The notes beneath the pieces are model-generated. The model was not told where the DNA came from, made no database searches, and was given only the letters and a program-made list of their open reading frames with translations. Positions 5,227 to 29,143 of a stretch of DNA of 29,143 bases are shown here, one piece after another (position 1 is the stretch's first letter; every line of letters begins with the position of its first letter). The stretch spans positions 1 to 29,143 of the forward strand of contig CDRNVI010000108.1 in assembly GCA_977017575.1 (NCBI GenBank), written 5' to 3'. Source of the stretch: Paramoeba atlantica (lineage: Eukaryota; Protista; Discosea). The position numbers and the translations under genes are program-made.

Positions 5227-7257
5227 ATGAATAATTATAAAATAAATAATATTGCAGTTAAAGATAATAATATGAAAACTATATTACAATTATGTAATAT
5301 GATTAATATAGATATACCAAAATTTTGTTATCATGAACAATTATCTATAGCAGGTAATTGTAGAATGTGTTTAGTTGAAGTAAAAGGAGCTATAAAACCT
5401 ATAGCTTCTTGTGCATCCCCTTTAAATAATAATATGCATATATTAACTAATACTAAATTAGTTAAAAAGGCTAGAGAAGGTGTTTTAGAATTTTTATTAT
5501 TAAATCATCCATTAGATTGTCCTATTTGTGATCAAGGAGGTGAATGTGATTTACAAGATCAATCATTAATTTTTGGTAATGATAGAGGTAGATTTTATGA
5601 AAATAAAAGATCTGTTAATGATAAAGATTGTGGACCTTTAATAAAAACTATTATGACAAGATGTATTCATTGTACTAGATGTATACGTTTTATAGATGAG
5701 TTTATTGGTTATAAATATTTTGGTTTGATAGGTCGAGGACAAAATATAGAAATAAGTAATTTTTTATCAAAAAATATTAATTCGGAATTATCTGGTAATT
5801 TAATTGATTTATGCCCTGTAGGTGCTTTAACTTCTAAACCTTATTCATTCATTTCTAGACCTTGAGAACTTATTTCTTGAAATACTATAGATATTAATGA
5901 TTTATTACATATAAATATTAGAATAGATATTAGAGATAGTGAAATATTAAGAGTTTTACCTTTATTTAATGATTATATACATGAGATCTGAATCTCAGAT
6001 CTAACTCGTTTTTCTTATGATAATCAAAAGAATAATCGAATAATTAATCCTTTAAAAAAGGAAGGTGCAAATAAATTTATTATATATAGTTGAGAAAAAG
6101 TATTAAATTTAATATTAAAAAAATGTTTAAATAGTAATTTACATTTTTTAATAGGTGATAATATAGATAGTGAAACTGCTTTAGTAATAAAAAAAGGAAA
6201 AAATTATTTTAATAATCATGAATTTACTATTAATTATAAAAAATTAACTAGGAATTCAAATAATCGTAAAAATTATATTTTAGATTATAATATATATAAA
6301 GAATTAAATGAATTTAAAAATATTATATTAATTAATATAAATATTAGATTAGAATATCCTTTATTAAATATAAAGTTAAAACGATTTAAAGATTTAAAAT
6401 TATTAAATATTTATAATATAGGGACCTCTTATAATCAAAATTATAAAAATATAAATTATTCATCTAATTTATTAGAAGTAAAAAAATTTATAGAGGGAAA
6501 ATCTTTATTAAATAATATTGTATTAAAAGCATCTAAAAATTTAATTTTATTAAATGATAATACTTTATTTAATTTTTTAATTACAACATTGAAAAATTTA
6601 AATTTAGAATCAAGTATTAATATAGGGTTTTTAAATAATTTAAATATAAATATTATAGCTAATGAATTAAATTTATTTAATTCATTAGTAAAATTTAATG
6701 ATTATAGTTTTAAAAAAATGATTTATAAAGAAAATAATATTTTATATAATTTAAATAATTATAATTATAATTATTTAAATTATAATTGTGATTATAATAT
6801 TTTTCAAGGTTGTTATTTACCTATATTAAAAGAAATTAATAATTATGATTTATTATTACCATCAATAACTCATTATGAAAAAAAAAGTTTATTTATAAAT
6901 ATATTTGGTTATTGTCAATCGACAAAATTTATTTTATTTCCGCCGAAGAATGCAAGAAATGATTGAAAAATATTATATATATTATTTAAAACAATTATTA
7001 GTGATGAAAAGATTATGAAATTATCTTTTAGTAATATTAGATTATTATTAAGTTCTTATAATATAAATATAAATACTATATTAAATATATATAATAATAA
7101 TGAAATATCAAATTATAAAAATATTATGGTTTTGAAAAATAAAAATTTATATAAAAATATGACTAATATATATTCTAATAATAAATTTTTACAATCATCA
7201 AAAATTTTAAACAGTTGTTTAATTAATTCTAAAAAAATATATAATAATTTTCATTAA
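5227..7257 (+). CDS. nad11: NADH dehydrogenase 75-kDa subunit (676 aa), unsplit
   Basis: Fe-S motifs [46 protein letters not shown] and DLCPVGAL. One frame to TAA at 7255-7257 with TGA=Trp; C-terminal half highly AT-biased. Confidence 0.95.
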
Positions 7258-7270
7258 AAGATTTTAAAAT

Positions 7271-8257
7271 ATGAATTTTTTGTTAACTTTAATTATAACA
7301 ATATTAAAATATTTAATTTTAATAGTACCTGTATTAGTAACTGTAGCTATTTTTACAGTTTTTGAAAGAAAAGTTATGGGTTATATACAACGAAGACAAG
7401 GTCCTATAAAAGTAGGTTTTTTAGGTATTTTGCAACCTTTTGCCGATGGTTTAAAATTAATGATAAAAGAACCTGTTATACCGGTAAATTCAAATTATTT
7501 AATGTATATAGCAGCTCCAATATTAACATTATTATTAAGTTTAATAAATTGAATATTAATACCTTTTGATGAAAATGTAGTAATATCTAATATTAATATA
7601 GGAGTTTTGTTTATTTTGGGTATTTCTTCTTTAAGTGTATATGGTGTTATTATAGCTGGTTGAGCTAGTAATTCAAAATATGCATTTTTAGGTGCTCTTA
7701 GATCTGCTGCACAAATGATATCTTATGAAGTATCTATAGGTATAATATTAATAACTCTTCTAATAGGTGTAGGTTCTTTAAATTTAAGTAATATAGTATT
7801 AGCTCAAGAGGATATTTGATTTATTATACCATTTTTTCCTTTATTTTTATTATTTTTTATATCTTCTGTTGCAGAAACTAATAGACACCCTTTTGATTTA
7901 CCTGAGGCAGAAGCAGAATTAGTTTCTGGTTATAATGTAGAATATTCATCAGTAGGATTTGCTTTTTTTTTTATCGGTGAATATGCTAATATTATATTAA
8001 TGAGTGCATTAAATGTAATTTTATTTTTAGGAGGTTGATTACCACCTTTTAATTTTAATTTTTTTTTACCGCCTATAGTATGATTTACAATAAAAATTGT
8101 TTTAATGATATTTTTATTTATAGTAATAAGAGCCATGTTACCTAGATATAGATATGATCAATTAATGATATTAGGTTGAAAAGTATTTTTACCGTTATCA
8201 TTAGGTTTATTAGTTTTCTATGCAGGTATAATGATTGGTTTTGATTTTTTACCTTAA
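7271..8257 (+). CDS. nad1: NADH dehydrogenase subunit 1 (328 aa)
   Basis: [48 protein letters not shown] and PRYRYDQLM motifs. Confidence 0.97.
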
Positions 8258-8290
8258 TTTTTTAGAATAATAAAATATAAAAAATTTTGA

Positions 8291-9763
8291 ATGTTATTAA
8301 AAATTTTACTTTTTTTACCATTATTTTTTGCGTTTATTTTAAGTTTAATACCTAAGAAAAAAATTATATTATTAAAACAATTATCTTTATTATTTAGTAT
8401 AATAATTTTTTTTTATTGTATTAAATTATTAGGTAATTTTAATATATATTATTCGTATATTCAATTTCAATCAAGTATTAGTTATTATCCTGGTATGGAT
8501 TTTAGTATAGGTATAGATGGTATTTCTATTTTTTTTATATTATTAATGAGTTTACTTTTACCTATTTCGTTATTAGTAAATTGAGAAAGTGTGAAATATC
8601 GTAATAAAGATTTTACTATTACTTTATTTATATTAGAATTTTTAGTTTTTTGTATTTTTTGTTGTTTAGATATATTTTTTTTTTATATATTTTTTGAAGG
8701 TGTTTTAATACCTATGTTTTTTATTATAGGTATATGAGGTTCAAGACAACGAAAAATTCATGCTGTTTATCAATTTTTTTTATATACTTTTTTTGGATCA
8801 ATATTTATGTTAGTATCTTTTTTAATAATTTACTTACATGTAGGTTCTACAAATTGAAATATAATTAAATATATTGAATTTTCTGATCAACGACAATTAA
8901 TATTATGATTAGGTTTTTTTATAGCATTTGCTATAAAAGTACCAATGATACCTTTTCATATATGATTACCAGAAGCTCATGTCGAAGCACCTACAACAGG
9001 TTCTATCTTATTAGCTGGTATTTTATTAAAATTAGGTACTTATGGTTTTTTAAGATTTTTATTACCTTTATTTCCTTATGGAATGAAATTTTTTTCACCT
9101 TTAGTTATAGTTATTTGTATAATTAGTGTTATATACGGTTCGTTAGTAACAATTAGACAAATAGATTTGAAAAAAATAATAGCATATTCATCTGTTGTAC
9201 ATATGAATTTTGCAATAATAGGTTTATTTGCTAATAATTTAGAAGGTTTACAAGGTAGTTTATTCTTAATGATTAGTCATGGTATAATATCAAGTTCTTT
9301 ATTTTTTTGCATAGGTGTTTTATATGATCGTTATCATAGTCGTATATTATATTATTATGGAGGTTTAGTACAAGTTATGCCTATATTTGCTGTAATATTT
9401 ATGATTTTTTCTTTAAGTAATATGGGCTTCCCTGGAACAAGTGGTTTTATTGGTGAAATTTTAATATTAATAGGAGTTTTTTTATGAAATATAAAAATTT
9501 CATTATTATTATTTACTAGTGTTGTTTTTGCAGCTGTTTATTCAATATGGTTATATAATAGATTAATTTTCGGTGAAATAAAAAATTATAATATAATGAT
9601 TTATAATAATTTTTATTATAAAAAATGATTTATAAAATTTTCAGATATTACTAAAAGAGAATTCTTTTTAATATTACCATTTATTTTTTTAAATTTTTTA
9701 TTAGGTTTTTATCCTGATTTAATTTTTAATGTAACTTATCTATCAATTTTATCACTTATTTAA
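8291..9763 (+). CDS. nad4: NADH dehydrogenase subunit 4 (490 aa)
   Basis: GIDGIS, KVPMIPFHIWLPEAHVEAPT, DLKKIIAYSSVVHM, SHGIISSSLF and GFPGTSGFIGE motifs; TAA at 9761-9763. Confidence 0.97.
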
Positions 9764-9774
9764 ATTTAATTATT

Positions 9775-11268
9775 ATGAATTTTACAATTATTTTTAAAAA
9801 TCAGGAATATCATTCTATATATAATGATATTAAATATTTATTACCAGAAATATTTTTAATTTCTGGTGTTTTATTAATTTTAGTATTTATTATTTTTTAT
9901 TCAAATATTAATGTATATAAATATATAAAATTAGTTTATTGTACTATTAATTTATTGGTATTTATATTAATATTATTTATATTATTAAATATTAATAATA
10001 TAGATAATAATTTTATTATTTCATCTTATTTATTATATAGTGACGGTATAATTTTTTTTTATAAAAATTTATTGTCAATAATTATGATTATATTATTAGT
10101 TACTTCTTATAATTATATGAGATTAAATAAATTATTAATATTTGAATTTTATATATTAATGTTATTATCTTTTATTGGTATGATAACTTTATTATTATCA
10201 TATGATTTTATTACAGCATATCTTTCTATCGAATTACAAAGTTTATGTTTTTATATTTTAGCGGCAATAAATAGAAATAAGAATAGTTCTATAGAAGCTG
10301 GTTTAAAATATTTTATATTAGGATCATTTTCATCAAGTTTATTAATAGTAGGTATAGCAATTATATATGGTGTAACTGGATTTACTAATTTTTATGATTT
10401 ATCAAAATTATTTGAATTAGGTTTATATAATATAAATTGGGATTCTTATATATTTATAGGTTTATTATTTATTAATATAGGATTATTTTTCAAATTAGCT
10501 ATACCTCCGTTTCATATATGATTACCAGATATTTATGAAGGTTCTTTGAAAATAGTATTAGCTATTTTTGCATTATTGCCTAAATTGGCTATATTAATAT
10601 TTTTTTGAAAAATATATTCTATAATTTTAATAAAAGATTTAATCGACTGACAAATATTTTTTTTAATATTTATACTATTATCTTGATTTATAGGTATATT
10701 AGGGGCTTTACAATCTAAAAAATTTTCAAGATTAATAGCTTACAGTTCTATTAATCATATGGGTTTTATATTATTAATTTTAATATTAAATGATGTATTG
10801 ACTTTAACTTTATATATAATAATTTATATTTTAGCTTTAATAAATATTTTAATAATATGATTAAATATATTTAAATTTAATAATTATAAAGGGATTAATA
10901 CTATATATCAATTTTTATATATTATAAAATCTAATAATTTATTATTTATAATTTTATTAATAGCTATATTTTCATTAGCAGGAATACCACCATTAGCTGG
11001 ATTTTTCAGTAAATTTTTTATTTTCATTAGTGCATTAAAACAAAATTATTATTTATTAGTAGTAATTGGACTTTTATTTAGTGTAGTTAGTTGTTTTTAT
11101 TATTTAAGGTTAATAAAAATTATTATGTTTAATAATAGTTTTTATTGATTTTTTTTAACTCCTTTAAAAAGAAGTTATGCTTACATAATTGTTATATTAT
11201 TTGTAGTAAATTCGATTTTTATATTATTATTGCCTTTTTTATTAGAATATTTAAATTATATAATATAA
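9775..11268 (+). CDS. nad2: NADH dehydrogenase subunit 2 (497 aa)
   Basis: ELQSL, EAGLKYFILGS, FKLAIPPFHIWLPDIYEG, IAYSSINHMG and AGIPPLAGFFSK motifs; TAA at 11266-11268. Confidence 0.96.
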
Positions 11269-11280
11269 TAATAATAATTT

Positions 11281-11886
11281 ATGAAGTATTTATATTTAAA
11301 TCAGTTAATTTCAAGTAATTATAATATATCTTTACATAAAAAAAATAAATGAGGTAGACAACAAATTAATAATATAATTGGTTGATGTAAATTACATAAT
11401 TATGTAATTATAGATATTGTTTCTATATTTTTTAATATAAAAAATATAATTAATATAATTAATTATATTTCAACTAAATTAGGTATATCTTTATTATGTT
11501 TATTATCAGATAGTAATATAATTAATACTTCATTAAAAAGAGTAAAAATAAAAAATTTTTATATGGTATATTTAGATAAAATTTATGGTTTTATATCTAA
11601 TTTTTATATGTTTATTAAAAAAGGTCGAAAACATTATAAAAATATAGTTAATTATAGATCAAAAAGGTTACCTGATATAGTATTTATGTCAAAAGATAGT
11701 TGAAAAGATTATAATAATTTTTTTAAAATATTTTTAGAATATAAAATATTATCTATAAAAAACACATCATTTTTAGAAAAGGATATTCATATTTGTTATA
11801 ATATTATGGTTAATAATTCTTTAATTATATATAATTTATGAAAATATATATATAAGCAAAATAGAATTTTATTTAAAAAATGTTAA
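11281..11886 (+). CDS. rps2: Mitochondrial ribosomal protein S2 (201 aa, divergent); absent from the ORF track
   Basis: Open with TGA=Trp. S2-like pattern: N-terminal H..KW..., YVIIDI, GFISNF, KRLPDIVF. Confidence 0.75.
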
Positions 11887-12593
11887 AAGTAAATTATAAA
11901 AAATTAAATTTAATAAGAGTTTATAAAAGAGATCTTTGAGGTAGAATAATATTAAATAGAAAATTATTATTAATTAGAAATTATATTATTAAATTATTAA
12001 AAATAAAAAAATTTAAATATAATAAAAGAATAAATTTTTATAGGATTAATAATTTTGAGAAACCTGTATATTTTAGAAGAAGAACTAGATATGGTAAATA
12101 TTTTATTTTACGAAGACAATTTAGAATTTTTTATGGTTTTTTAAGTATTAAAAATATAAAAAAAATCATAAAAAAAAGTTTTAAAAAAAAATATGCTTTA
12201 AGTTATTTTATTTATATGATGGAATCTAGATTAGATGTATTAGTTTATAGATTACATTTAGTTAAAAGTGTTAGATCAGCTAGACAATGAATATTTAATG
12301 GTAATATTATTGTTAATAATAATATTATAATTAATCCACAATATAATTTAAAAAAAGGTGATATATTAACTTTAAATAAAAAAAAAATATTATATTTTAA
12401 AAAAAAATTATATTATAATATAAAAACAAAAAATTGATCTCGAAGTATTATACCTAATTATATTGAATATGATTATAATAATTTTGTTTTTAAATTTATA
12501 AGTCTTAATATATATGATGTACCTTTTTTTGCTCCGGTTACTTCTTATACTTTTTTAAATATAATGAATTTTTATACAAGATATTATTTTTAA
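11880..12593 (+). CDS. rps4: Mitochondrial ribosomal protein S4 (237 aa); absent from the ORF track
   Basis: MESRLDVLVYRLHLVKSVRSARQWIFNGNIIVN matches the S4 RNA-binding motif; IPNYIEYDY near the C-terminus. Overlaps rps2 by 7 nt (ATGTTAA). Confidence 0.92.
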
Positions 12594-12706
12594 TTTATTA
12601 AAATAATAATATCTTTAAACTTGATCTTTTTTTGTTTTGTGTGTTTATTTATCGTTATTACACATAAATTTATTAATAATAATTATGTATTTTAAGATAA
12701 ATAATT

Positions 12707-14206
12707 ATGGACGCTAATAATCAGCAAAATAATATTTATTTTGGAATTGTAATTAAAGTTAAGGATGGTATTGCAACAATTAAAGGATTAGAAAACGCTA
12801 AAGCAGGAGAAGTTTTAGAATTTTCTAGTGGTGCTAAAGGATTAGCATTAAACTTAGCTGAAAATGAAATTAGTTCTGTTATTTTTGGTAATGAACAATT
12901 AATTAAACAAGGGGTTCGAGTCAAAAATACAGGTAAATTAATGACTATTAATATTTCTTCTAAATTATTAGGTAGAGTTATTAATGCTATAGGTGAGCCT
13001 ATAGATAATGATACAGCTATTGCTGCAACAGAAGTTAAAAATGTTGAGCAAAAAGCAGTAGGTATTATCGCTAGACAATCTGTTCATGAACCTATGTTAA
13101 CAGGTATGAAATCTATAGATTCTTTAATTCCTATAGGTCGTGGTCAACGTGAATTAATTATTGGTGATAGACAAACAGGTAAAACTTCTATAGCTGTCGA
13201 TACTATTATTAATCAATTAAATTATAATAATAATGTTGATTTTAAAAATGTTAATTTATATTGTGTTTATGTAGCTATTGGTCAAAAAAAATCAACAGCT
13301 GCTAGAATATTTAGTACTTTACAATCATTTCAATCAGCGCAATATACAGTTATTGTAAGTGCATTTGCTTCTGAATCTGCATCATTACAATATTTAGCAC
13401 CTTATGTAGGTACTTCTATAAGTGAGTATTTTAGAGATAATAAAAAACATTGTGTCATTATATATGATGATTTAACTAAACATGCTGCCGCTTATAGACA
13501 AATGTCTTTATTATTAAGAAGACCACCAGGTAGAGAAGCTTATCCAGGAGATGTTTTTTATTTACATTCTAGATTATTAGAAAGATCTTCTAAATTATCT
13601 ACTAAATTAGGTTCAGGTTCAATAACCGGTTTACCTGTTATTGAAACATTAGAAGGAGATGTTTCGGCTTATATTCCAACTAATGTTATATCTATTACAG
13701 ATGGTCAAATATTTTTAGATACTGAACAATTTTATTCAGGTATAAGACCAGCAGTAAGTGTTGGTTTATCGGTTAGTAGAGTTGGTGGAGCTGCACAACC
13801 TAAATTAATGAAATCATTAGCAGGTTCTTTAAAGGTTGGTTTAGCCCAATTTAGAGAAGTTGAAAGTTTTGCTAGTTTAGGTTGTGATATAGATCCTGTT
13901 ACTCAACAATTATTAGATCGTGGTTATAGATTAACTGAATTATTTGTACAAAGTAGATTTAATAATTATTCATTAGATTTATCTTTATTATCAGTTTTTG
14001 CAGGTTCTAAAGGTTTTTTTGATAAATTAGCTATAAATAAAATAAATGGTGTATTTGAAGAAATGGTTTTAGAAAGTAAAAAATTATTTTGATTACCTTT
14101 TTTTCAATTTTTAAATGATGTAATTCATCCTGATAAAGTTGGTCTAAATTATAACTTTTTAGAAAGTTTTTTAGGCTCTTATAATAAATGATGTATTAAT
14201 ATTTAA
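12707..14206 (+). CDS. atp1: ATP synthase F1 alpha subunit (499 aa)
   Basis: [17 protein letters not shown] (Walker A), [25 protein letters not shown] and [18 protein letters not shown]. Reads through TGA at 14090 to TAA at 14204-14206. Confidence 0.97.
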
Positions 14207-14211
14207 AAAAA

Positions 14212-15231
14212 ATGATTAATTTTGTAAATAATATAATTTTTTCAAATTTAGAGGCAGATTATGCTTTACCTGGACAATTAGGTTTTCAATACCCAGCTAA
14301 TACTATAGCTCGAGGAATTATTGATTTGCATAATCATATTATGTTTTTTTTAGTTTTTATTGTTGTATTTACTTTTGCTATGATTTATTTCACTTTAAGT
14401 ACATTTACAATAAATAATAATAGTAATTTAGAGATTTTTAATAAAGTAAAAAATTTTTATAATGTAAGAATTTCGCATAATACATTATTAGAAACTCTTT
14501 GAATTATAATACCAAGTTTAATATTAATATCTATAGCAATACCGTCTTTTGCTTTATTATATGCTATGGAAATATCTGGTGTAAGTCTGTTAACAATGAA
14601 AGTTACAGGACATCAGTGATATTGATCTTATTCTTTTGTATTTAGTTTAGATAATCCTCAAATTGTATATGATATTGCGAGTAATACAAATATAGAGTTA
14701 GGAGGTTCTTTTTCAAATAATATAGCTGAATTTAGTTTCGATAGTTATATGGTACCTACTAATGAATTATCAGATAAAGGTTTACGTTTATTAGAAACTA
14801 CAAATCCAGTAGTATTGCCTGTAGATACTTTTATAAAAGTATATGTAACAGCTAGTGATGTATTACATTGTTGAGCTGTCCCTTCATTAGGTATAAAAAT
14901 AGATGCTTGTCCTGGTAGGTTAAATCAGGTAAATTTATTTATAGATAGAATTGGTCATTTTTATGGTCAATGTAGTGAATTATGTGGTGTAAATCATGGT
15001 TTTATGCCTATTGAAATATATAGTATAACTAAATTAGATTATATTACATATTTATGTTTAGCTTGTGAAGATTTTAGAAATAATTCGTTTAATCAACTAA
15101 TAAATTATTATCATTATTTTTATGAAGATGGAAGTAATGCTATTGTTTTTACTAGAGGTTTCTATGATTGATGACAAGATCAACTTAATTTATCAATAAA
15201 AGAATTTTTAAATAAAGAAAATAGTATATAA
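14212..15231 (+). CDS. cox2: Cytochrome c oxidase subunit 2 (339 aa, with leader and long C-terminal extension)
   Basis: QLGFQ, GHQWYWSY, DVLHCWAVPSLG and CuA motif [14 protein letters not shown]; TAA at 15229-15231. Confidence 0.97.
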
Positions 15232-15234
15232 AAT

Positions 15235-16104
15235 ATGATTAATAAATTTAAACATTTTCATTTTTGACATATTGTAACAATTAGTCCATGACCTTTATTA
15301 TTATCTATGTTTGCATTATCAATGCCAGTAGGTTTAGTAACTTTTTTTCAAGGATTTTATTATGGTGTACCTGTATTTTTTATAGGTTTAATTATGGTAA
15401 TATTTATTATATGTTTATGATTTAGAGATATAGTAATTGAAGCAAGTTATGAAGGTCATCATACTAAACAAGTTCAATCAAGCTTAATTATAAGCTTTTT
15501 ACTTTTTATTTTTTCAGAAGTAATGCTTTTTGTAGCTTTTTTCTGAGCTTTTTTTCATTCAAGTATTTTTCCTACAGTAGAATTAAATTGTAGTTGACCT
15601 CCCGTAGGAATGAGTGAAATAATTATGGATCCTTTTGGTATTCCTTTATTAAATACTTTATTATTATTAACATCAGGTGCTACTTTAACTTTAGCACATT
15701 TATATTTAAAACAAGGATATATGGATAAATGTTTATTAACTATGGTTGTTACAATTGTATTTGCTGTATTATTTTTATCTTTTCAGTTTTATGAATATAG
15801 TGTTTCTGCTTTTGATATTTCAGATGGTGTTTATGGTTCAACTTTTTTTTGTTGTACTGGTTTACATGGTTTTCACGTTATTGTTGGTACTATAGCTTTA
15901 AGTATGACTACTTATCGTATATATTTATCACATTTTTCACGTAATCACCATTTAGGTTTTGAATTTGCAGCTTGATATTGACATTTTGTTGATGTAGTAT
16001 GATTATTTTTATATATGATTATATATTGTTGAGGTAGTGATATGGTAGCTCCTCTTATATTAGAATTAAAAGATGGAAAAGAGAATATTTTTTATTTAGT
16101 ATAA
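15235..16104 (+). CDS. cox3: Cytochrome c oxidase subunit 3 (289 aa)
   Basis: HIVTISPWP, EGHHT, FSEVMLF..FFWAFFH, TGLHGFHV and WYWHFVDVVW motifs; TAA at 16102-16104. Confidence 0.97.
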
Positions 16105-16111
16105 ATTTACA

Positions 16112-17774
<1,663 letters not shown>

Positions 17775-17790
17775 TAATTTTACTAATATA

Positions 17791-17864
17791 ATCCCTCTGG
17801 TCTAATTGGTTAAGACATATCACTCATAATGGTACTGATATAGGTTCAAGTCCTATGGGGGATA
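17791..17864 (+). tRNA. tRNA with CAT anticodon: Ile2-type (lysidine) or elongator Met
   Basis: Cloverleaf; acceptor ATCCCTC/GGGGGAT, loop CTCATAA. C3-C4-C5 and the D-arm resemble tRNA-Ile2, and ATA codons are abundant, but identity is unresolved. Confidence 0.9.
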
Positions 17865-17865
17865 A

Positions 17866-17937
17866 ATAGTTGTAGTGTAGTGGTTAACATATTAGTCTTC
17901 AAAACTAATGACATAGGTTCAAATCCTATCAACTGTG
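17866..17937 (+). tRNA. trnW: tRNA-Trp(UCA)
   Basis: Cloverleaf with loop CTTCAAA; independently confirms TGA=Trp. Confidence 0.95.
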
Positions 17938-17969
17938 TTAATTATAGATGATATAATTAAATATAATAA

Positions 17970-18041
17970 AATAGGGTGACTGAAAGGTAAAGTATTGTTT
18001 TTTGGCAGCAAATCGTGTAGGTTCGAGTCCTACTCCTAAGT
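17970..18041 (+). tRNA. trnQ: tRNA-Gln(UUG)
   Basis: Loop TTTTGGC, T-arm GTAGG-TTCGAGT-CCTAC; acceptor pairs 1 and 2 mismatched. Confidence 0.88.
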
Positions 18042-18054
18042 ATTAAAATTTTTT

Positions 18055-18127
18055 TTAAGGATAGTATAAATGGTTATTATAATTGATTGCAAATCTATAG
18101 ATATCGGTTCGAGTCCGTTTCCTAACT
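18055..18127 (+). tRNA. trnC: tRNA-Cys(GCA)
   Basis: Loop TTGCAAA, U73 discriminator; acceptor pairs 1 and 3 mismatched. Confidence 0.88.
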
Positions 18128-18154
18128 TTTTTAAATTTAATATAAATATAATAA

Positions 18155-18227
18155 ATACCTATAGTTTAATTGGTTAAAACATGCATTTGATAAGTGCAAA
18201 TTGATAGTTCGAGTCTATCTGGGGTTA
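18155..18227 (+). tRNA. trnI: tRNA-Ile(GAU)
   Basis: Loop TTGATAA; acceptor pairs 2 and 3 mismatched. Confidence 0.92.
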
Positions 18228-18236
18228 TAAATAAAA

Positions 18237-18309
18237 AAATAGTTAGCTCAATTGGTAGAGCATCGGCCTTTTAAGCTGAGGGTTATAGGTTCGAGCCCTA
18301 TACTATCTA
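18237..18309 (+). tRNA. trnK: tRNA-Lys(UUU)
   Basis: Loop CTTTTAA; acceptor pair 2 is A:C. Confidence 0.93.
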
Positions 18310-18315
18310 TAAAAA

Positions 18316-18388
18316 TATGGAATGGTGTAATAGGTTAGCACATCGAGTTGTGATTTCGATAGTATGAGTTCAAGTCTCATTTCTTACC
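18316..18388 (+). tRNA. trnH: tRNA-His(GUG)
   Basis: Loop TTGTGAT, C73 discriminator; acceptor pairs 1-3 mismatched; G-1 not encoded. Confidence 0.92.
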
Positions 18389-18454
18389 TAAATTAAGAAT
18401 AATAAAATTAATAAAATATATATTTTATTAAAATTTTTTTATTAATTTGTAAAG

Positions 18455-18528
18455 ATAGATGTGATGGAATTGGTAGACATATTAGTTTTAGGCACTAAAT
18501 TTTAGGGGTTCGAGTCCCCTCATCTGTA
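18455..18528 (+). tRNA. trnL: tRNA-Leu(UAG), short variable loop
   Basis: Leu-type D-arm ATGGAATTGGTAGACAT, loop TTTAGGC, variable region of only 5 nt. Confidence 0.9.
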
Positions 18529-18562
18529 TTGTATGTATAAAAAAAGAAAAAATATTTTTTAT

Positions 18563-18633
18563 AAGGATGTAGTTTAAAGGTAAAATATCTATTTTGGGTG
18601 TAGACGTTATAGGTTCAAATCCTATCGTCCTGA
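18563..18633 (+). tRNA. trnP: tRNA-Pro(UGG)
   Basis: Loop TTTGGGT; acceptor pair 1 is A:G (canonical Pro is C1-G72). Confidence 0.93.
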
Positions 18634-18646
18634 TAATTATAATAAC

Positions 18647-18720
18647 AAGGAGGTAGCTTAATAGGCTAAAGCTTTAACCTGTCGAGTTAAAAGATGAGGG
18701 TTCGAATCCCTTCCTCCGCA
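18647..18720 (+). tRNA. trnD: tRNA-Asp(GUC)
   Basis: Loop CTGTCGA; acceptor pairs 1 and 2 mismatched. Confidence 0.9.
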
Positions 18721-19020
18721 TAAAATATAATAAAATATGTTTATTTTATTACTATATAATCAAGATGTTTTGTATATAAAATATAAAATATTATCTATTA
18801 TATCTATTATATCAATTTATGATAAATGTACATTTACCATATGAAATAACAGTCATAAAACATACATATTTTACTTAAAATTTTTTTAAAAAGAGAAAAA
18901 ATTATAAAATAAATAATTATAGTAATTTAAAAGATTTTATTTTTTTAATAAAATAAAAAATTAGTAAATTAATATGATTATTTATTTTAGATATATCTTA
19001 CTTTAATAATATATGATTTA

Positions 19021-19092
19021 TTTTTCTTCGTCTAATGGTTAGGACATTGCTCTTTCACAGCAGAAATAAGGGTTCAAATCCCTTAGAAATGA
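19021..19092 (+). tRNA. trnE: tRNA-Glu(UUC)
   Basis: Glu-type TCGTCTAATGGTTAGGAC D-arm, loop CTTTCAC; pair 2 is T:T and pair 1 is T-G. Confidence 0.92.
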
Positions 19093-19193
19093 AATTATTT
19101 TATCCGTATTAATTTAATTTAATAAAATTTTTTTGTAAATTTTTGAAATCTATTATACACTGATTTAAGTATATTATTTGTCACATATAATAA

Positions 19194-19245
19194 GGGGGGT
19201 TTGGGGGGTTTGTATAAGAGATAATATTTTATTTTCATATACAAA
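19194..19245 (+). promoter_or_regulatory. G6-TTT-G6 tract followed by a hairpin; candidate control or replication element
   Basis: The only long G tracts in the AT-rich mitochondrial spacers. Followed directly by TTTGTATA...TATACAAA arms with further inner pairing. Function is inferred. Confidence 0.35.
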
Positions 19246-19266
19246 AATTTTTATTAATTATTTTTT

Positions 19267-19349
19267 AATGGTGTGATGGAATTGGTAAACATGATAGACT
19301 TAAAATCTATTGCCTTTTAGGCTTGAGGGTTCGAGTCCCTCCTCCAATA
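19267..19349 (+). tRNA. trnL: tRNA-Leu(UAA)
   Basis: Loop CTTAAAA, long variable arm TGCCTTTTAGGCTT; pair 2 is A:A and pair 6 is T:T. Confidence 0.92.
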
Positions 19350-19367
19350 ACGATGAGTTAATTATTT

Positions 19368-19440
19368 TTTAAGATGGAGTAATAGGTTAACTCAGTGGTC
19401 TCATGAGCCACAGATGTAGGTTCGAGTCCTACTCTTCTTA
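19368..19440 (+). tRNA. trnM: Initiator tRNA-Met(CAU)
   Basis: GGAGT...ACTC D-stem with A11-U24 (initiator hallmark), loop CTCATGA; acceptor pairs 1-3 mismatched. Confidence 0.88.
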
Positions 19441-19539
19441 TATAATTACGTAAATATTATTATGGATTACATTTGAATATGTAATCAATTTTGAATTTTT
19501 ATTAATTAGTAAAATATATGTATAAAAATATTTTCGAAA

Positions 19540-19779
19540 ATGGCAGGACAAGAAATTATGTTAATTTTTGCAAAAAAAGTAGGTGCTGGTTTAGCTACTA
19601 TAGGTTTAGCAGGTGCTGGAGTAGGTATAGGAATAGTTTTTGGAGCTTTTTTAATTGCTTATTCACGTAATACTACAATTAAAAACGATTTATTTGGTTA
19701 TACTTTATTAGGTTTCGCATTAACAGAAGCAATTGCTCTGTTTGCCCTAATGATGGCTTTCTTAATCTTATATACTTAA
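19540..19779 (+). CDS. atp9: ATP synthase subunit c
   Basis: [21 protein letters not shown] and [12 protein letters not shown] (proton-carrying Glu) motifs. Confidence 0.97.
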
Positions 19780-19806
19780 TCAACCTATTTTTGTTGTTTT
19801 GTATTT

Positions 19807-19880
19807 AATTGGTTAGTTTAATTGGTTAAAATTATGATCTTCTAAATCATTAGATATAGGTTCGAGTCCTATACCAATTA
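19807..19880 (+). tRNA. trnR: tRNA-Arg(UCU)
   Basis: Loop CTTCTAA; fully Watson-Crick acceptor AATTGGT/ACCAATT. Confidence 0.94.
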
Positions 19881-19888
19881 TAATTTTT

Positions 19889-19969
19889 TATAGTGTGGCT
19901 GAGCGGTAAAGCGGTAGACTGTAAATCTATTGTATTTATACATCGTAGGTTCGAATCCTACCACTTCCA
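19889..19969 (+). tRNA. trnY: tRNA-Tyr(GUA)
   Basis: Loop CTGTAAA, long variable arm. The 5' strand TATAGTG faces CACTTCC, so pairs 1-3 are mismatched. Confidence 0.94.
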
Positions 19970-20029
19970 TTTGATTAAAATATATAATAATGTTGAATAA
20001 TTTTTAAACAAATCATTTTAAAATTTTTT

Positions 20030-21025
20030 TATAAATTTAAAATAGTATTAAACGGATATCTTGCCAATAATAAGTTTATAGACGTTTTAAAACGTAATGT
20101 GAAAGTAAAATAATAATAATTTTTCAATATTCACGTATCTAAAGGGAAAACCCAATTAAATTAAATAATTAAAGAATATCTAATGAATTGAATCATCTTA
20201 GTAATTAGTTAAAAAAATAAAAATGATATTATTAGTAGTGGCGAGCGAAAATAAAATAGCTAAATTAAACAATAATATAAATAAAAAATATAATAATTTG
20301 GAATAATTAACAAAATAAGTAATAGTCTTGTTATTTTTTATTATTATTATTGGTTTTGAGTAAAATAAAAACTAAATTTGTTTGAAGATTAGAGTACCAT
20401 CTCTAAAGGCTAAAGAATTATTATTGAGCGATAGTGAAAAAGTACTGTGAAGGAAAGATGAAAAGAAATTTTTTAAAAATGTTGAAATAGATTTTGAAAT
20501 TTAATACTAAATAGCACTTTAAGCATAAATAATTATATGTTAAAAGGTACCTTTTGCATAATGGGTCAGTGAGTTAATTATTGTAGCAAAATAAAAAATT
20601 ATTAAATTTTTTAATTGTAATTAATATATTTATAGTTATAATAATTAGACCCGAAACCAAGTGATCTAGTCATGGGCAGATTGAAGTTAATTAAATATTA
20701 ATGGAGGATCGAACCCGTTTATGTTGCAATATATTGGGATGACCTATGATTAGGGGTGAAAGGCTAATCAAACTTGGAGATAGCTGGTTTTCTACGAAAT
20801 CTATTTAAGTAGAGATGAAATTTAAATTTATATAAGGTAGAGCTACCATATTGGGTTGTTGAATCCATATGAACTTCAAATAAATATAAAGTAAAAATTT
20901 TAATTTCGATATATGGCGAAAAGGTTGTATATCAAGAGGGAAAGAGCCCAGATTATAAATTAAGGTTTCTAAATTAATATTAAGTTAAAAAGTATATTAT
21001 AATATTAACAATGAATAGGAGGTAG

Positions 21026-21059
<34 letters not shown>

Positions 21060-22800
21060 CAGCTCACTATTGATAGATATTTATATACAAAAATATAACG
21101 AAAATAAATATTATACCGAAATTATAAAATATTATTTAAAATAATAATATTGGTAGTAGAACGTTTTATAAAAGAAAAAAAAAATTGTTAAATTATAAAA
21201 TTAAAATTGAATATACTGGCATAAGTAGCAAAAATAATGTTATAAACATTATCATCTAAAAATCTAAGGTTTCTAATGTCAAGATAAACTGCATTAGGTT
21301 AATCGGTCCCTAAAATGAATATGATAGTAATAATTGAAGGGTAGTTAAAGAGTTATAAGGATAACATAATATTTTTAACGTTATTAGTAGATGACAGTTT
21401 ATTTTTTAAATATTTTAGGATCAAATTTTAATAAATATAGTAAAACATTGTGTGATATATTCGAATATATTGATTGAAATATTTAAAAAATAAATTCAAG
21501 AAAGAATACTAATATATAAAACCGTACTAAATCCTACACAGGAGGATTAGTAGAGAATACTAAGATGAATAATTGAATAATATCGAAGGAACTCGGCAAA
21601 TTAACTCTGTAACTTCGGGAGAAAGAGTATTTTTATATATACATTATATGTATATAAAAATGTAACAGAATAGAGGATGGCGACTGTTTAACAAAAACAC
21701 AGGACTTTGCAAAATTAATTAATGATGTATAAGGTCTGACACCTGCCCGGTGCTATAAAGGTAATTGTTATTGTTAATATATTATTTAATGTATTAGCTT
21801 TATATAGAATGAATAGTAAACGGCAGCTGTAAATATAACGGTTCGAAGGTAGCGAAATTCCTTGTCGAGTAAGTTTCGACCTTGCATGAATGGTGTAACG
21901 ACTATCCTACTGTCTCCGGTATTATATTAGCGAAATTGAATTCTCTGTGCAGATGCAGCGTATTAATAGCTAGACGGAAAGACCCTATGCACCTTTACTG
22001 CAGTTATATTTTGTTATTAAAAATTAAATTTATAGGATACAAACTAATCGTTTTAAAATTTTAATATTAGTTAATTGTTTAGATAATCTTGGAATAGTTT
22101 GAATTTAATTTTTAAAATTTAATAATTTTTTATTGACAGAATATATTTGGTAGTTTCTCTGGGGCGGAGACCTCATAAAATGTAACTGAGGTGTACAAAG
22201 GTAATTAAAATTTTATTAGAAAATTTTGGCGTGTAATGGCTAAAAATTACTTAACTGTGAGATTTACAAATCAAACAGAGATCTTTTTTATTAAAAAGGT
22301 CGGTCATAGTGATCCAATATAATTGAATGGAAAATATATTGCTCAACGGATAAAAGGTACGCTAGGGATAACAGGCTTATGACTCCGGAGAGAAGATATC
22401 GACGGGGTTGTTTGGCACCTCGATGTCGATTGGTCACATCCTGGTTAAGAAAAATGTTCCAAGGGTAAGGCTGTTCGCCTTTTAAAGTGGCACCTGAATT
22501 GGGTTCAGAACGTCGTGAGACAGTTCGGTTCCTATCTACTATTAATTAATTAAAATTGAAGGAATCTTATCTTAGTACGAAAGGACTGGAGAAGGAATAT
22601 CACTGGTAAATCGGTTGTAATTATAATTGCATAGTCGAGTAGCTAAATATTAATAATATAATTATTGAATTCAATCAGATATAAGAAGATTATCCTAAAA
22701 TATTTTAAAAGTATTGATTGTAAAAGATTATTACGAAATTAAGTTATGTGTGTAAGTCCTGTGAAGGATTGAGCTAAATAATTTTAAGAATCAATCTAAT
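20030..22800 (+). rRNA. rnl: Mitochondrial large-subunit rRNA, no intron seen; ends approximate
   Basis: Conserved cores: GAAAAGTACTGTGAAGGAAAG, GACCCGAAACCAAGTGATCTA, AAGGTAGCGAAATTCCTTGTC, GACGGAAAGACCC, GGGATAACAGGCT, CACCTCGATGTCG, AGAACGTCGTGAGACAGTTCGG, sarcin-ricin loop AGTACGAAAGGAC. Confidence 0.96.
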
Positions 22801-22804
22801 TTAT

Positions 22805-22832
22805 AAAAAGAAAAAAGAAAAAAGAAAAAAAA
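22805..22832 (+). repeat. Short (A6G)n purine tract after the LSU rRNA
   Basis: AAAAAG AAAAAAG AAAAAAG AAAAAAAA. Confidence 0.6.
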
Positions 22833-22929
22833 TTTCTATATAAGAAAAAATAAAATATATAATATTTTGAAAATATTATATGTAATAAAACAACAAACTT
22901 TAAATTAAAGTTTGTAATTTGTAAAACAA

Positions 22930-23002
22930 TACTTGGTAGTTTCAATGGTAAAATAATTGGCTGTTAACCAATCAGATGTAGGTTCGAATCCTGCCCAGGT
23001 CG
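22930..23002 (+). tRNA. trnN: tRNA-Asn(GUU)
   Basis: Loop CTGTTAA, G73 discriminator; pair 1 is T:C. Confidence 0.93.
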
Positions 23003-23017
23003 TTGTATAAAAAATAA

Positions 23018-23106
23018 GTTTATGTGGCTGAGTGGTTTAAAGTAATCCTCTTGAAAAGGATCGTATAATTTTAATTATACCGTGGGTTCGAATCCCACCA
23101 TAATCT
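23018..23106 (+). tRNA. trnS: tRNA-Ser(UGA)
   Basis: Loop CTTGAAA, long variable arm; pair 2 is T:T. Confidence 0.93.
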
Positions 23107-23167
23107 TAATATAAAAAAAAAGGAAAAAATTTATGTAAATTATATAATATATAATATATTATATATA

Positions 23168-23727
23168 AATACTTGTATGTTTTATTCTGGCTTTGAGTAA
23201 ATGCTAGTAGTTCGCTTAACACATGCTAGTCAATTAAAATTTAAAATTTAAAATTAATGGCGTAAGGGTGAGTAATATATAAAAACGGGACTTATAATTA
23301 TGTTTATATTATAAACTGGTTTATAAAGATTTAGGTAGTTGGAGGTGTAATAGACTAACAAGCCGATAATTCTTAGTTGATCTTAGAAGGAGGTACAACC
23401 ACATTGGGAATGAGAAAAGGCCCAAGTTCCATTAGGAGGCAGCAGTGAGGAATATTGAACAATGAGCGAAAGCTTGATTCAGCGAAACTACCTGAATTAT
23501 GACAATTTATTGAAAAATTCTTGTTTAAGTGAGCATAATGAGGTTAAACTTAAGAATAAGCATCGACTAACTTCGTGCCAGCAGTCGCGGTGATACGGAG
23601 GATGCGGGTGTTACTCAGCATTACTGGGCGTAAAGCGTATGATAAGTGGTTTATTTTTTAATAATATAATTTTAAAGGCGTTATTAGTAATAATGAATAA
23701 ATTATATATTAGTAAACTAAGAGTAGT
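23168..23727 (+). rRNA. rns: Mitochondrial small-subunit rRNA, 5' portion only, truncated at the junction
   Basis: CTTAACACATGCTAGTC, GGAGGCAGCAGTGAGGAATATTG, GTGCCAGCAGTCGCGGTGATAC and TACTGGGCGTAAAGCG; stops near E. coli-equivalent position ~660. Confidence 0.94.
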
Positions 23728-24592
23728 TTGGAAGAACATGGGATCGGTAGACCATCAACCTATGCATCGATCATTTCTACACTGCAAGCACGTGAATACG
23801 TACAACTTGATAATAAACGATTTACACCTACTGATGTGGGTCGCGTAGTCGCTAAATTCCTCACCACGTACTTTACCAATTATGTAGAATATAATTTTAC
23901 TGCGCGCATGGAAGATGCTTTAGATGAAATTGCACGTGGCGAAAAAGAATGGTTACCGTTAATGGATGAATTTTGGGAGCGCTTTAAGCAGCGCATTGAT
24001 GAAATTAATCAGACGGTCAAACGCAGTGATGTGACCCAAGAAAAACTCGATGAGAATTGTCCGAAATGTAGTAAACCATTATCCATTCGTTTGGGACGAC
24101 GTGGTCGCTTTATTGGTTGCACTGGTTATCCTGATTGTGATTACACACGCAATTTAGACGGTGACGATAATCAAGAACAAGTAGAAGCCGTTGAAGGACG
24201 TCAATGTCCTGAATGCCAACAAACATTAGTCATCAAAACGGGTCGTTATAGTAAATTCATCGGCTGCAGCAATTACCCTGAATGTAACTTCACTGAACCA
24301 TTAGAAAAAACCAAAAGACACTGAAATAGCATGTCCTAAGTGCAAAAAAGGTAATATATTAGAGCGTAAATCACGACGTGGTAAGATCTTTTATTCATGT
24401 GCCTGCTACCCTAATTGCGAATATGCATTATGGGATCCACCAATAGCAACACCATGCCCTAATTGTGAGTGGCCTATTTTAACGATTAAAACCACGAAGC
24501 GTAGAGGTCGTGAAATACTATGCCCACAACAGAACTGTAATTACCGTGAAGCCTATGAAGAAGATACAACGACTACTGATGGCTCCAAATAA
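23728..24592 (+). CDS. topA: Bacterial DNA topoisomerase I, C-terminal part (5' lost at junction), with a +1 frameshift in the A6 run at 24305-24310
   Basis: LEEHGIGRPSTYASII, FTARMEDALDEIA and repeated C4 zinc ribbons (CPKC...FIGCTGYPDC). After removing one A the frame continues PKDTEIACPKCKKG...CPNCEW...CPQQNC to TAA at 24590-24592. Confidence 0.93.
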
Positions 24593-24637
24593 TAAATTGT
24601 TAACTGCTTCCATTAACTATATAGATAAGATTGCAAC

Positions 24638-25192
24638 ATGTTAGATCAACAGTATATTGATCAAGCTGCATTACTATTACAACAGGGTGGAGTGATTGCT
24701 TACCCGACAGAAGGTGTGTACGGTTTAGGCTGCGATCCATTTAATCAAGTCGCCTGGCAACGTATCCTAGATATTAAACAACGTCCAGCAAACAAAGCAT
24801 TCATTGTGGTTGCCAGTGAATTTGCACAAATTGATAATATCATTGATACCTCTGCTGTTACTGATCTAGATTACATCATGACAACTTGGCCCGGCCCTGT
24901 TACTTGGATATTTCCATTGTCTGAAAAGGGACGTACACTATTGCTGCCAGGATTAACTTCATTAGCAGTACGGATTAGCGCACATCCTATTATCAAAACA
25001 GTATGTGAACAGTTTGCAAAACCGATAACATCAACCAGTGCGAATGTGGCGAATCAAACTCCGTTAACCGATTATGATGATGTCGTTACACAATTTGGTA
25101 AACAGGTTGATTTAGTCATCCCAGGAAATATTGACAATCATATTGGCCCGACACCAATATACGACGCGATAACAAAGGAAAAAATACGGTAG
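24638..25192 (+). CDS. tsaC: L-threonylcarbamoyladenylate synthase (YrdC/Sua5 family)
   Basis: GGVIAYPTEGVYGLGCDP, IKQRPANKAFI, LAVRISAHP and ITSTSAN motifs. Confidence 0.93.
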   Translation: MLDQQYIDQAALLLQQGGVIAYPTEGVYGLGCDPFNQVAWQRILDIKQRPANKAFIVVASEFAQIDNIIDTSAVTDLDYIMTTWPGPVTWIFPLSEKGRTLLLPGLTSLAVRISAHPIIKTVCEQFAKPITSTSANVANQTPLTDYDDVVTQFGKQVDLVIPGNIDNHIGPTPIYDAITKEKIR

Positions 25193-26116
<924 letters not shown>

Positions 26117-26148
26117 CACACTGTAATGTTCAGGAAAACAGGATAGCA

Positions 26149-26155
26149 AGGAGGT
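26149..26155 (+). promoter_or_regulatory. Shine-Dalgarno site for the hydrolase gene
   Basis: AGGAGGT ending 3 nt before the ATG at 26159. Confidence 0.7.
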
Positions 26156-26158
26156 AAC

Positions 26159-26881
26159 ATGCAAACACAATTGATTGAATACACACATACGGATACCACA
26201 TTAGAAGGCTTCTGTGCAGTTGATGCCACGCATGGTAAACAACAGCCATTGGTACTAGTTGCACATGCATGGGGTGGACGTGATCAATTTGCCTGTGATC
26301 AAGCACGTGCATTAGCTAAACTAGGATATGTCGGCTTTGCTATCGATATGTTTGGTAAAGGTGTATTAGGTAATAGTCGTGAACAAAACACACAATTAAT
26401 TGCCCCCTTTATCGAAGACCGACAATTCTTATTAGCACGTTTACAAGCTGGATTAGAGGCAGCTAAACAATTACCTTTTGTCGATCAACAACGTGTTGCT
26501 GCGATTGGATTTTGTTTTGGCGGATTATGCGTACTTGACTTAGCGCGTAGCGGAACAGCCATTAATGGTATTGTTAGTTTTCATGGTTTATTAAATGCGC
26601 CAGACAATGCGAGTCGCAATAATAACATTTCAGCAAAAGTACTGGTGTTACACGGTTATGATGATCCCATGGCAACTCCAGACCAAGTCATAACATTTTG
26701 TCAAGAAATGACGGCTACCAAAGCTGATTGGCAATCGCATGCCTATGGCAATACCATGCATGCCTTCACCAAGCCCGATGCAAACGACCCAGATTTTGGT
26801 ACGGTCTACAACGAATTGGCTAATCAACGTGCCTGGTTGGCGATGCAAAACTTCCTCACTGAGCTATTTACCACCTTATAG
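26159..26881 (+). CDS. Dienelactone hydrolase family alpha/beta hydrolase
   Basis: Nucleophile elbow IGFCFGG, SFHG, HGYDDP and catalytic-His motif TMHAFT. Confidence 0.92.
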   Translation: MQTQLIEYTHTDTTLEGFCAVDATHGKQQPLVLVAHAWGGRDQFACDQARALAKLGYVGFAIDMFGKGVLGNSREQNTQLIAPFIEDRQFLLARLQAGLEAAKQLPFVDQQRVAAIGFCFGGLCVLDLARSGTAINGIVSFHGLLNAPDNASRNNNISAKVLVLHGYDDPMATPDQVITFCQEMTATKADWQSHAYGNTMHAFTKPDANDPDFGTVYNELANQRAWLAMQNFLTELFTTL

Positions 26882-27352
26882 GGAATAAAACTAAGGAAAA
26901 ATTTTATTTTTCAGGTCAATTCAATCAGTTACAACAAGCTGAATATTGGCAATAAATTGGCCGACCAACTACACTTATAGGTAAGCGGTATTGTGTTATT
27001 GGTTATGCTATTTTGCGGCAACAAATGCACACTAAAAATTATAAGAAAAACATCTACATTTATTACACTCAATAAAAAATCATCAAATCTGCTAAATCGC
27101 AGCATTGGGGGTTTTATACATTTTTTTAATGCCCTTAAAACGGGTACACCGATGTTTTTCTTACTATCTCCCATAACACATAAACTGCTTATTTGTATAA
27201 ATAAATGATAATAAATAAATAACATTTTTGGCAGTTACATATTAGGGGTTATGCAATTAGTTAAATAATAATATTTGATTATTAACCAAATCTACTGAAT
27301 TATTATATCCCTAAATGCCGTTATGTAACCTGCACTATTAAGGTGGCAGCAG

Positions 27353-27895
27353 ATGGCATTACGTGTCCAGCAAACAAAAAAGAAATCCGCACTGGGATCA
27401 GCTGTATCAAAATGGCTGAGGTCTACGCATGATCTATTGTCACAATTAAGAAGTGTACGTTTTGGTGCTTACGCTCCTGTTGGCAGCAGTCTTGGTTACA
27501 ACACTATGCTCATTATTGGTGAAGCCATCATTGGTGGGATCTCTATTACTTATAGTACCCCAACATTGGCCACAGAATACCAAGACATGTTACATCGTCA
27601 CAAAAAAATTGATGAAGAATTTATACAATACCGAAAACTTAGTATTAATGATGGTGTAACCACACTTGAATTGGAACAGTATAAAAATTTCTTTGATGAA
27701 CAATTCTTATTGTTACACGAATTTGATGAGAATCTATTTGATTATTATGAAGCTGATTTAGACTCAGATACAAAAGGCGATGATGAACCTAGAGAACCCG
27801 AAATAATAAATGATCCACCAGTAACACCACCAATGCCTGAGATACCCGCACCTGAACCTGAACCAGAACCTGAGCCTGAGCCCGAGCCCGAGCCT

Positions 27896-27936
<41 letters not shown>

Positions 27937-29143
27937 TGAGCCTGAACCAGAACCTGAGCCTCAACCACCTACCGTAGACTTAAGTACCAATAGTGCTGGC
28001 ACCAGCTACTCTACCACATTTACTGAAGATACCAGTACAGTGGCATTAAACGATGGAACATTAAGTATTACTGATAGCGATAGCACGACATTAACATCTG
28101 CCACAATAAGGATTACTAACTTACTTGATACAAATGCTGAAATATTAGCAATCAATACGACTGGCACTAACATAGTAAGCAATTATGATACTAACACGGG
28201 CATCATGGAGCTAACTGGCACAGATACACTTGCCAATTATGAAACCGTATTAAAAACTTTAACGTATGAAAATAACTCAAATACGCCTAATACCACTAGC
28301 CGTACCATTGACATTAGTATTAGTGATGGCACTAATAGCACGGTTGCAACTGCAACCGTTAACATTACCCCAGCAAACGATATTTCCATAATTGATTTAA
28401 ATGGTGCAAGCACAGGCGGCACCAATTACACTACCACATTCGTAGAAAAAGGTGGTGCTATTACGATTACTGATAGCAATATCGCGATTACCGATCCAGA
28501 CAATACATCATTGCAATCTGCTGAAATTTCTATTACTAATATTTTAAATGCCGGTGAAGAAATATTAGCAACCGATACCACTGGCACTAATATTACTGCT
28601 AATTACAATAGCACTACTGGCGTATTATTATTAACTGGCAATGACTCAATCGATAATTATGTTAGTGTCATTCGACAAATCACTTTCGATTTAACATCGA
28701 ACAATCCTAATACAACACAAGATCGTATTATTGAATTTGTTGTCAACGACGGTGATGACAACAGTGCTACCGCGACTACAACCGTGACCATGAACGCTGT
28801 CAACGATGCACCCGTATTTGACCTCGATGGCTCTACCGGCGGTGTCGACTTCTCAACATCCTTCACTGAAGACGGGGGCGCAGTCAGCATCGTGGATACT
28901 GATTCCACCCTAACCGACGTTGATGATACCCATATTGAATCAGCTACCATTACCATCACTAACCAACTCGATGGCACCGACGAAACCTTAAACTTCGATA
29001 CCACGGGCACTAATATCACTGGCAACTATAACGCTGGCACTGGCGTACTAACGCTATCAGGCTCCGATGAACTCGCGGATTACTTAACTGTATTAAGCAC
29101 CATTACCTATAACAACACTAGCCAAAACCCAAACACCACGGCG
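27353..29143 (+). CDS. Large repetitive surface or secreted adhesin-like protein, N-terminal 597 aa (runs off the window; absent from the ORF track)
   Basis: Stop-free from ATG 27353 to the window end. N-terminal domain, acidic segment, (PE)18 linker, then about 142-aa Thr/Asp/Asn-rich Ig/cadherin-like repeats ([10 protein letters not shown]...FTEDGG...SATITITN...TGVLTLSG...TY.N.S..P). Confidence 0.88.
27851..27958 (+). repeat. Coding 6-nt tandem repeat, (CCN GAR)18 encoding (Pro-Glu)18
   Basis: 18 PE units counted; perfect CCAGAA x6 core at 27899-27934. Confidence 0.95.
27965..29143 (+). repeat. Three degenerate ~426-nt (142-aa) domain repeats, the third incomplete
   Basis: Boundary AAC GAT (ND) at 28376 and 28802, 426 nt apart; shared ACTGGCACTAA(T/C)AT (TGTNI) in each unit. 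Confidence 0.85.

Follow-up and report, generated by a model that had tools for sequence, protein, structure and literature searches.

A probable read-level chimera between amoeba mitochondrial DNA and a gammaproteobacterial topA gene in a Paramoeba atlantica contig

Introduction

Contig CDRNVI010000108.1 of the Paramoeba atlantica assembly GCA_977017575.1 passes from a mitochondrial ribosomal RNA gene directly into a bacterial topoisomerase gene, which raises the question of whether the two pieces of DNA were joined in a cell or in the course of preparing, sequencing and assembling the sample. The whole contig, 29,143 nt in length, was analyzed and is referred to here as the window. An initial annotation made from the letters alone had described the switch and had considered it an assembly, MDA or ligation chimera rather than a real transfer.

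Chimeric reads have been reported for ligation-based long-read preparations, where they are commoner, and such reads can mimic DNA integration and hinder its validation (PMC8495745). MDA chimeras arise, in the mechanism that PMC11660948 attributes to Lasken and Stockwell (2007), when a displaced 3' end anneals to another strand.

Results

Mitochondrial side of the window

Positions 1 to 23725 (forward strand) are Paramoeba-type amoebozoan mitochondrial DNA, as assigned from alignment to a parent sequence, gene calls, Pfam matches and tRNA and rRNA calls. The genes follow each other in the order cob (3' end), nad3, atp6, nad4L, nad5, nad6, nad11, nad1, nad4, nad2, two rps-type ORFs, atp1, cox2, cox3 and cox1, after which come a cluster of 15 tRNA genes that also includes atp9, then rnl (20029-22808), trnN, trnS and the 5' part of rns. 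This gene set is typical of amoebozoan mitochondria, and the predicted Atp1 was 80% identical to Atp1 of Paramoeba pemaquidensis (P0044). Altogether 17 mitochondrial tRNA genes were called, at 17791-19970 and 22930-23107, with atp9 (79 aa) lying within the tRNA cluster at approximately 19540-19779.

The mitochondrial parent was found by look-ups with nad6, nad4L and the 499-aa Atp1 (P0001) and is ena:ERZ24900291:ctg3923c, a contig of 39,429 bp, the suffix 'c' of which we read as circular. Window 1-8386 corresponds to ctg3923c 31044-39429 with 100% identity, and window 8384-23725 to ctg3923c 1-15343 with 99.96% identity. The window thus runs without a seam over the start and end of ctg3923c (fetched stretches L009 and L013), which gives independent support to a mitochondrial circle of 39,429 bp and indicates that the mitochondrial side of the window is an ordinary stretch of this circle. 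Three further assemblies and two Logan run assemblies also contained near-identical mitochondrial contigs. In a different metagenome the mitochondrial contig ERZ25074695:ctg243506_2x_l had the same gene order and was only 94% identical over 3.5 kb; its source is probably a sister species of the present amoeba.

The mitochondrial side ends in a truncated rns (mitochondrial SSU rRNA), of which only the 5' part is present, at 23169..23725 on the forward strand (Rfam, 258 bits). Rfam aligned the window rns only to the region around 23650, and the cut was placed from the parent alignment, at position 648 of the 1533 positions of the bacterial SSU model. This position lies in the central domain, on the 5' strand of one of its helices, and everything after it is lost from the window. 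In the parent, rns (L013 14787-15825) covers SSU model positions 1-1139 with a score of 541.7 bits; it continues unbroken for at least 482 nt past the break and ends only with the fetched stretch of ctg3923c, at 15825.

Bacterial side of the window

From 23726 onwards the window is bacterial, and all the genes named here lie on the forward strand except where stated. The 3' part of topA, encoding TopA residues 481-768, occupies 23726..24592 and was assigned by Pfam and by 99.98% identity to a fetched chromosomal locus (L001) described below. The reading frame which starts LEEHGIGRP corresponds to positions 332-410 of the 411-position Pfam Topoisom_bac profile and also includes the Zn-ribbon fingers; the window lacks the Toprim domain and the larger part of the Topoisom_bac core. 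It is followed by a tsaC/yrdC-family gene at 24638..25192 (Pfam Sua5_yciO_yrdC, E = 6.8e-45; gene order as in L001), by hemF for coproporphyrinogen III oxidase at 25205..26116 (Coprogen_oxidas, E = 5.5e-130) and by a dienelactone hydrolase family gene at 26159..26881 (DLH, E = 2.2e-38). After a small ORF on the opposite strand comes the 5' part of a gene for a giant acidic repeat protein, at 27353..29143, which corresponds to the L001 gene 12149-20912 on the forward strand.

An exact-protein look-up with HemF returned one contig only, ena:ERZ24900291:ctg4025c, of 2,447,832 bp, which is OZ220716.1, the record entitled 'MAG: Gammaproteobacteria bacterium ... chromosome: 1'. L001 8522-13939, from this chromosome, corresponds to window 23725-29143 with 99.98% identity and one gap. 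In the parent topA is complete (L001 7082-9388, 768 aa) with Toprim, Topoisom_bac and Zn-ribbon parts, and the genes are arranged in the order dprA, IS, smg (DUF494), topA, tsaC and hemF. The initial annotation had suggested a search for intact copies of both genes elsewhere: topA is whole in ERZ24900291, and rns is unbroken there as far as model position 1139, which is the extent of the gene that was covered.

The closest relatives of the bacterial TopA were from Coxiellaceae MAGs, with 62-64% identity. The IS of the parent chromosome (L001 5692-6585), which carries a DDE_Tnp_1 transposase and lies between dprA and smg in OZ220716.1, ends 1.9 kb upstream of the break. In L001 4057-6585 dprA was called as two overlapping pieces of 221 and 254 aa. 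The split dprA, the IS, the chromosome size of 2.45 Mb and the Coxiellaceae-like TopA hint at a host-associated, partly eroding genome, and the gammaproteobacterium is possibly a symbiont of the amoeba.

The giant repeat protein is at least 3020 aa long in the parent, where its gene runs off the locus, and is composed of tandem units of approximately 420 nt (about 140 aa) which are 85-90% identical to each other; its Pfam matches were all below the curated cut-offs. Window 28730-29143 was 85-90% identical to six repeat copies in L001, and the right end of the contig lies inside the first of the units of approximately 420 nt.

Base composition and genetic code

The changes of base composition and genetic code which had been claimed for this point were both borne out. 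The GC content is 0.217 over 1-23725 and 0.399 over 23726-29143, and in the 100 nt flanking the join it is 0.22 on the left vs 0.40 on the right. The nine mitochondrial genes counted contained 65 in-frame TGA codons and three TGG codons, and a tRNA with a UCA anticodon is encoded at 17866-17937. The bacterial genes of the window contained 18 TGG codons and no in-frame TGA, apart from a stop created by a frameshift. TGA is read as Trp on the mitochondrial side, and the bacterial side uses the standard code. ARAGORN labelled the tRNA at 17866-17937 as SeC; it is actually a Trp tRNA which reads TGA.

Position and anatomy of the join

The abrupt switch from mitochondrial SSU rRNA to topA was confirmed in the sequence. 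The initial annotation had placed it at 23727/23728, which is 2 nt too far to the right; an ungapped three-way comparison of the window with L013 and L001 located the break at 23725/23726. The mitochondrial parent equals the window up to 23725 and the bacterial parent equals it from 23725 on, so that the overlap of the two parents at the join is a single base, the A at 23725, with 23724 found only in the mitochondrion and 23726 only in the bacterium. Past the break the mitochondrial parent has TTATTCAGA where the window has TTGGAAGAA, and read further it continues as TTATTCAGATATATAG. A short microhomology join through TTGGAAGAA had been suggested, and this is ruled out by the parent sequence.

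Longer sequence in common was likewise lacking at the break. Within 300 nt of the breaks the longest word common to the parents was of 12 nt, AT-rich, away from the break and out of register, and over all parent sequence compared the longest common word was of 15 nt. No repeat or target-site duplication was found at the join when the window and both parents were compared, and no run of N was present in the window. The absence of a transposase, integrase or tRNA attachment site close to the join, which had been noted from the letters, agreed with the Pfam scan and the tRNA calls: the seven reading frames scanned on the bacterial side of the window included no transposase or integrase, and no att-type tRNA was found at the join, the closest tRNA genes being mitochondrial trnN and trnS at 22930-23107, 620-795 nt away. 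A megablast comparison of the bacterial side of the window with a plasmid collection gave no match. An IS-mediated event was ruled out as the closest IS of the parent chromosome is the one located 1.9 kb from the break, outside the window.

There is only one junction in the window; the contig starts within mitochondrial cob and stops within the bacterial repeat gene. The breaks, at position 648 of the SSU model and at residue 481 of the 768 of TopA, are arbitrarily placed. As had been pointed out from the letters, they fall in the middle of two essential genes. Both genes are left non-functional in the contig.

Differences from the parent sequences

Six window-specific differences from the parents were found, all of them within 12673-24305, and the outer 12.7 kb (1-12672) and 4.8 kb (24306-29143) of the window were 100% identical to the parents. 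On the mitochondrial side a TA is deleted in a TA-rich repeat at 12673, an extra G at 16334 (forward strand) shifts the frame of cox1, an A8 run is shortened to A7 at 20210, C is replaced by T at 22118 and an A5 run is lengthened to A6 at 23009. On the bacterial side A5 has become A6 at 24305..24310 (forward strand), which shifts the frame of topA and leads to a TGA stop at 24322-24324. No effect was noted for the differences at 12673, 20210, 22118 and 23009. Of the six, one is a substitution and the other five are indels, all located in runs of a single base or of TA repeats. Five short-run indels to one substitution is the pattern of errors expected of accurate long reads and not the pattern left by mutation.

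At each of the five mitochondrial sites ctg3923c and ctg8206, which are from independent assemblies, have a common reading that differs from that of the window. In the window cox1 (16109-17771) is split into two frames, the second of which starts only at 16335; in ctg3923c, ctg8206 and ctg2721l it is an intact ORF of 553 aa. The break in the window cox1 is a consensus error and not a pseudogene.

The probability that all five mitochondrial differences fall by chance in the junction-proximal 11 kb was 0.022, and for all six to fall in so short a span it was about 0.04; both values were calculated post hoc and are only moderately significant. Homopolymer runs numbered 18.0 per kb in the clean left part vs 13.8 per kb in the error-bearing part, so that more errors of this type would be expected on the left. 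The contig naming points to HiFi metagenome assemblies; the platform and the type of library were deduced from these names and from the error pattern alone. A single uncorrected chimeric read, 11.6 kb or more in length, may have covered at least the interval 12673-24305.

Discussion

Origin of the join

On the evidence of these comparisons the join is probably an artefactual read-level chimera and not a transfer, and we would put the probability of this at roughly 0.86, a figure which includes a variant in which the chimera was formed by amplification. Both partners are unbroken at the break elsewhere (ctg3923c, and ctg4025c = OZ220716.1, both in ERZ24900291), and this supports an artefact. 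The same is true of the absence of any recombination signature and of the indel errors around the join: the two sequences meet arbitrarily, without homology, target-site duplication or recombination site. Overlap-based and k-mer-based assemblers need shared sequence to connect two paths, and with an overlap of one base it follows that the join would have been present in at least one read. We infer that such a read exists, and that a single read or very few carry the join, which would have been made in vitro. Given the 100% identity to the parents in its outer 12.7 kb and 4.8 kb, the window appears to come from an assembly that shares its reads or its culture with ERZ24900291. The earlier view of the join as an artefact rather than a transfer is thus upheld by the unbroken parents, the lack of signature and the indels, and its assembly-chimera option, in the sense of a mis-join by the assembler, is unlikely, as the parents have no shared sequence at the break.

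The most likely route is a library chimera formed by blunt ligation, amplification being less likely. Two sheared fragments, one from the multicopy mitochondrial DNA of the amoeba and one from the chromosome of a co-occurring gammaproteobacterium, would have been joined end to end during library preparation, by blunt ligation rather than through an amplification artefact, and the product would then have been sequenced as one long molecule. The assembler may have retained this chimeric read and extended it to the left with normal mitochondrial reads and to the right with normal bacterial reads, until the tandem repeat stopped the extension and left a contig of 29 kb.

That a polymerase jumped from one template to the other, by template switching in MDA or PCR, is an unlikely form of this read-level artefact, even though the formation of chimeras by MDA is well known (PMC11660948). 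Amplification ahead of long-read sequencing is common for low-input protist samples, as would suit this route. A chimera made by MDA is in most cases an inverted rearrangement within a single locus, and no inverted-repeat arrangement of one locus was seen in the window. Template switching also needs an annealed displaced 3' end (PMC11660948), and the short homology available for such an end is here the single base at the join, which is compatible with template switching and lends it no support; an overlap of this kind would be more in keeping with blunt end-joining. A link made purely by an assembler or scaffolder, with no read carrying the join, would suit a short contig composed of two abundant cobiont sequences with its right end in a tandem repeat that is hard for assemblers. 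We regard it as very improbable: the parents share one base at the join and their longest nearby common word, of 12 nt, is out of register, no run of N is present, and the read-type errors centred on the junction point to one physical read. An overlap mis-join by the assembler, in particular, was rejected, the parents having no shared sequence at the break.

The one-base blunt join is also to be expected from non-homologous end joining in a cell, which counts against the artefact reading, as does the post hoc and only moderately significant statistic for the clustering of errors. An end-joined recombinant formed in vivo in the amoeba, either as a recent mosaic nuclear insertion or as an extrachromosomal concatemer of degraded DNA, would be consistent with this blunt junction and with a bacterium that may be intracellular (TopA closest to Coxiellaceae MAGs, dprA in two pieces beside the IS). 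We consider it improbable, and it is marginally less probable again that DNA of a Coxiellaceae-like intracellular bacterium and of a Paramoeba-type host mitochondrion was truly end-joined within the cell, an event which, if real, would be the mixing of organelle and symbiont DNA caught in the act. No nuclear flank is present, the contig ending in mitochondrial DNA on one side and in bacterial DNA on the other. The differences cluster around the join, are mostly indels of the homopolymer type and are not spread evenly as mutations would be, and with outer parts that are 100% identical to the parents the event would have to be extremely recent. Least credible of all is a true organelle-to-bacterium transfer, after which a subpopulation of the bacterium would carry mitochondrial DNA in its chromosome; the same possible intracellular habit (the Coxiellaceae-like TopA and an IS in a 2.45-Mb genome) could be cited in its favour. 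Such a transfer would destroy the only topA seen, which is intact in the closed chromosome, and 23.7 kb of AT-rich DNA with another genetic code would be dead weight; there is a single junction, no mobile-element or homology signature accompanies it, and the error pattern speaks against it.

Insertion of any kind would be expected to leave two junctions with recipient DNA on both sides and a divergence that is spread out and rich in substitutions. What we found was one junction and, in the inner 11 kb, five differences of which four are short-run indels, with one further indel just across the join on the bacterial side. Nor was there an element gene, repeats, a duplication or a tRNA site to indicate mobile-element or site-specific integration.

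Comparison with known systems

The join resembles the chimeras of ligation libraries (PacBio SMRTbell, ONT ligation kits) in that unrelated fragments are placed end to end with no homology, the parents are unbroken at the breaks and both partners belong to the abundant kinds of DNA in the sample. It differs from the usual ligation chimera in that it escaped removal and became part of a 29-kb contig in the deposited assembly, and the library type in this comparison is an inferred one. With MDA chimeras it has in common that distant sequences are artificially joined, as in low-input samples, but here two different genomes are involved and the overlap is one base. The near-blunt join and the arbitrary cuts within genes are also features of NUMTs and of bacterial insertions made by non-homologous end joining. 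Unlike NUMTs and nuclear bacterial insertions the present join has no nuclear flank, its parents are virtually identical to it and the differences are clustered read-type errors.

Consequences for the deposited record

No transfer, new element or new mechanism is supported, and the join is very probably not a biological feature. The 29-kb contig of the deposited holobiont assembly has 23.7 kb of amoeba mitochondrial genome fused to 5.4 kb of bacterial chromosome; it is open to binning or annotation as either partner and might give rise to a mistaken claim of lateral gene transfer. The contig would be better split at 23725/23726, or replaced by ctg3923c and OZ220716.1, the correct versions of both sequences being public as ERZ24900291 ctg3923c and OZ220716.1. 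A systematic screen of the assembly for chimeric contigs is probably needed.

The frameshifted cox1 and topA of the contig resemble pseudogenes. Split genes were also observed in ERZ24894578:ctg2721l (L008, L014), a linear contig of 36.6 kb that represents this mitochondrial genome as well, and in which numerous homopolymer indels peculiar to it interrupt cob, nad5 and nad11 in the gene calls; these split genes are the product of another low-coverage consensus and are not pseudogenes.
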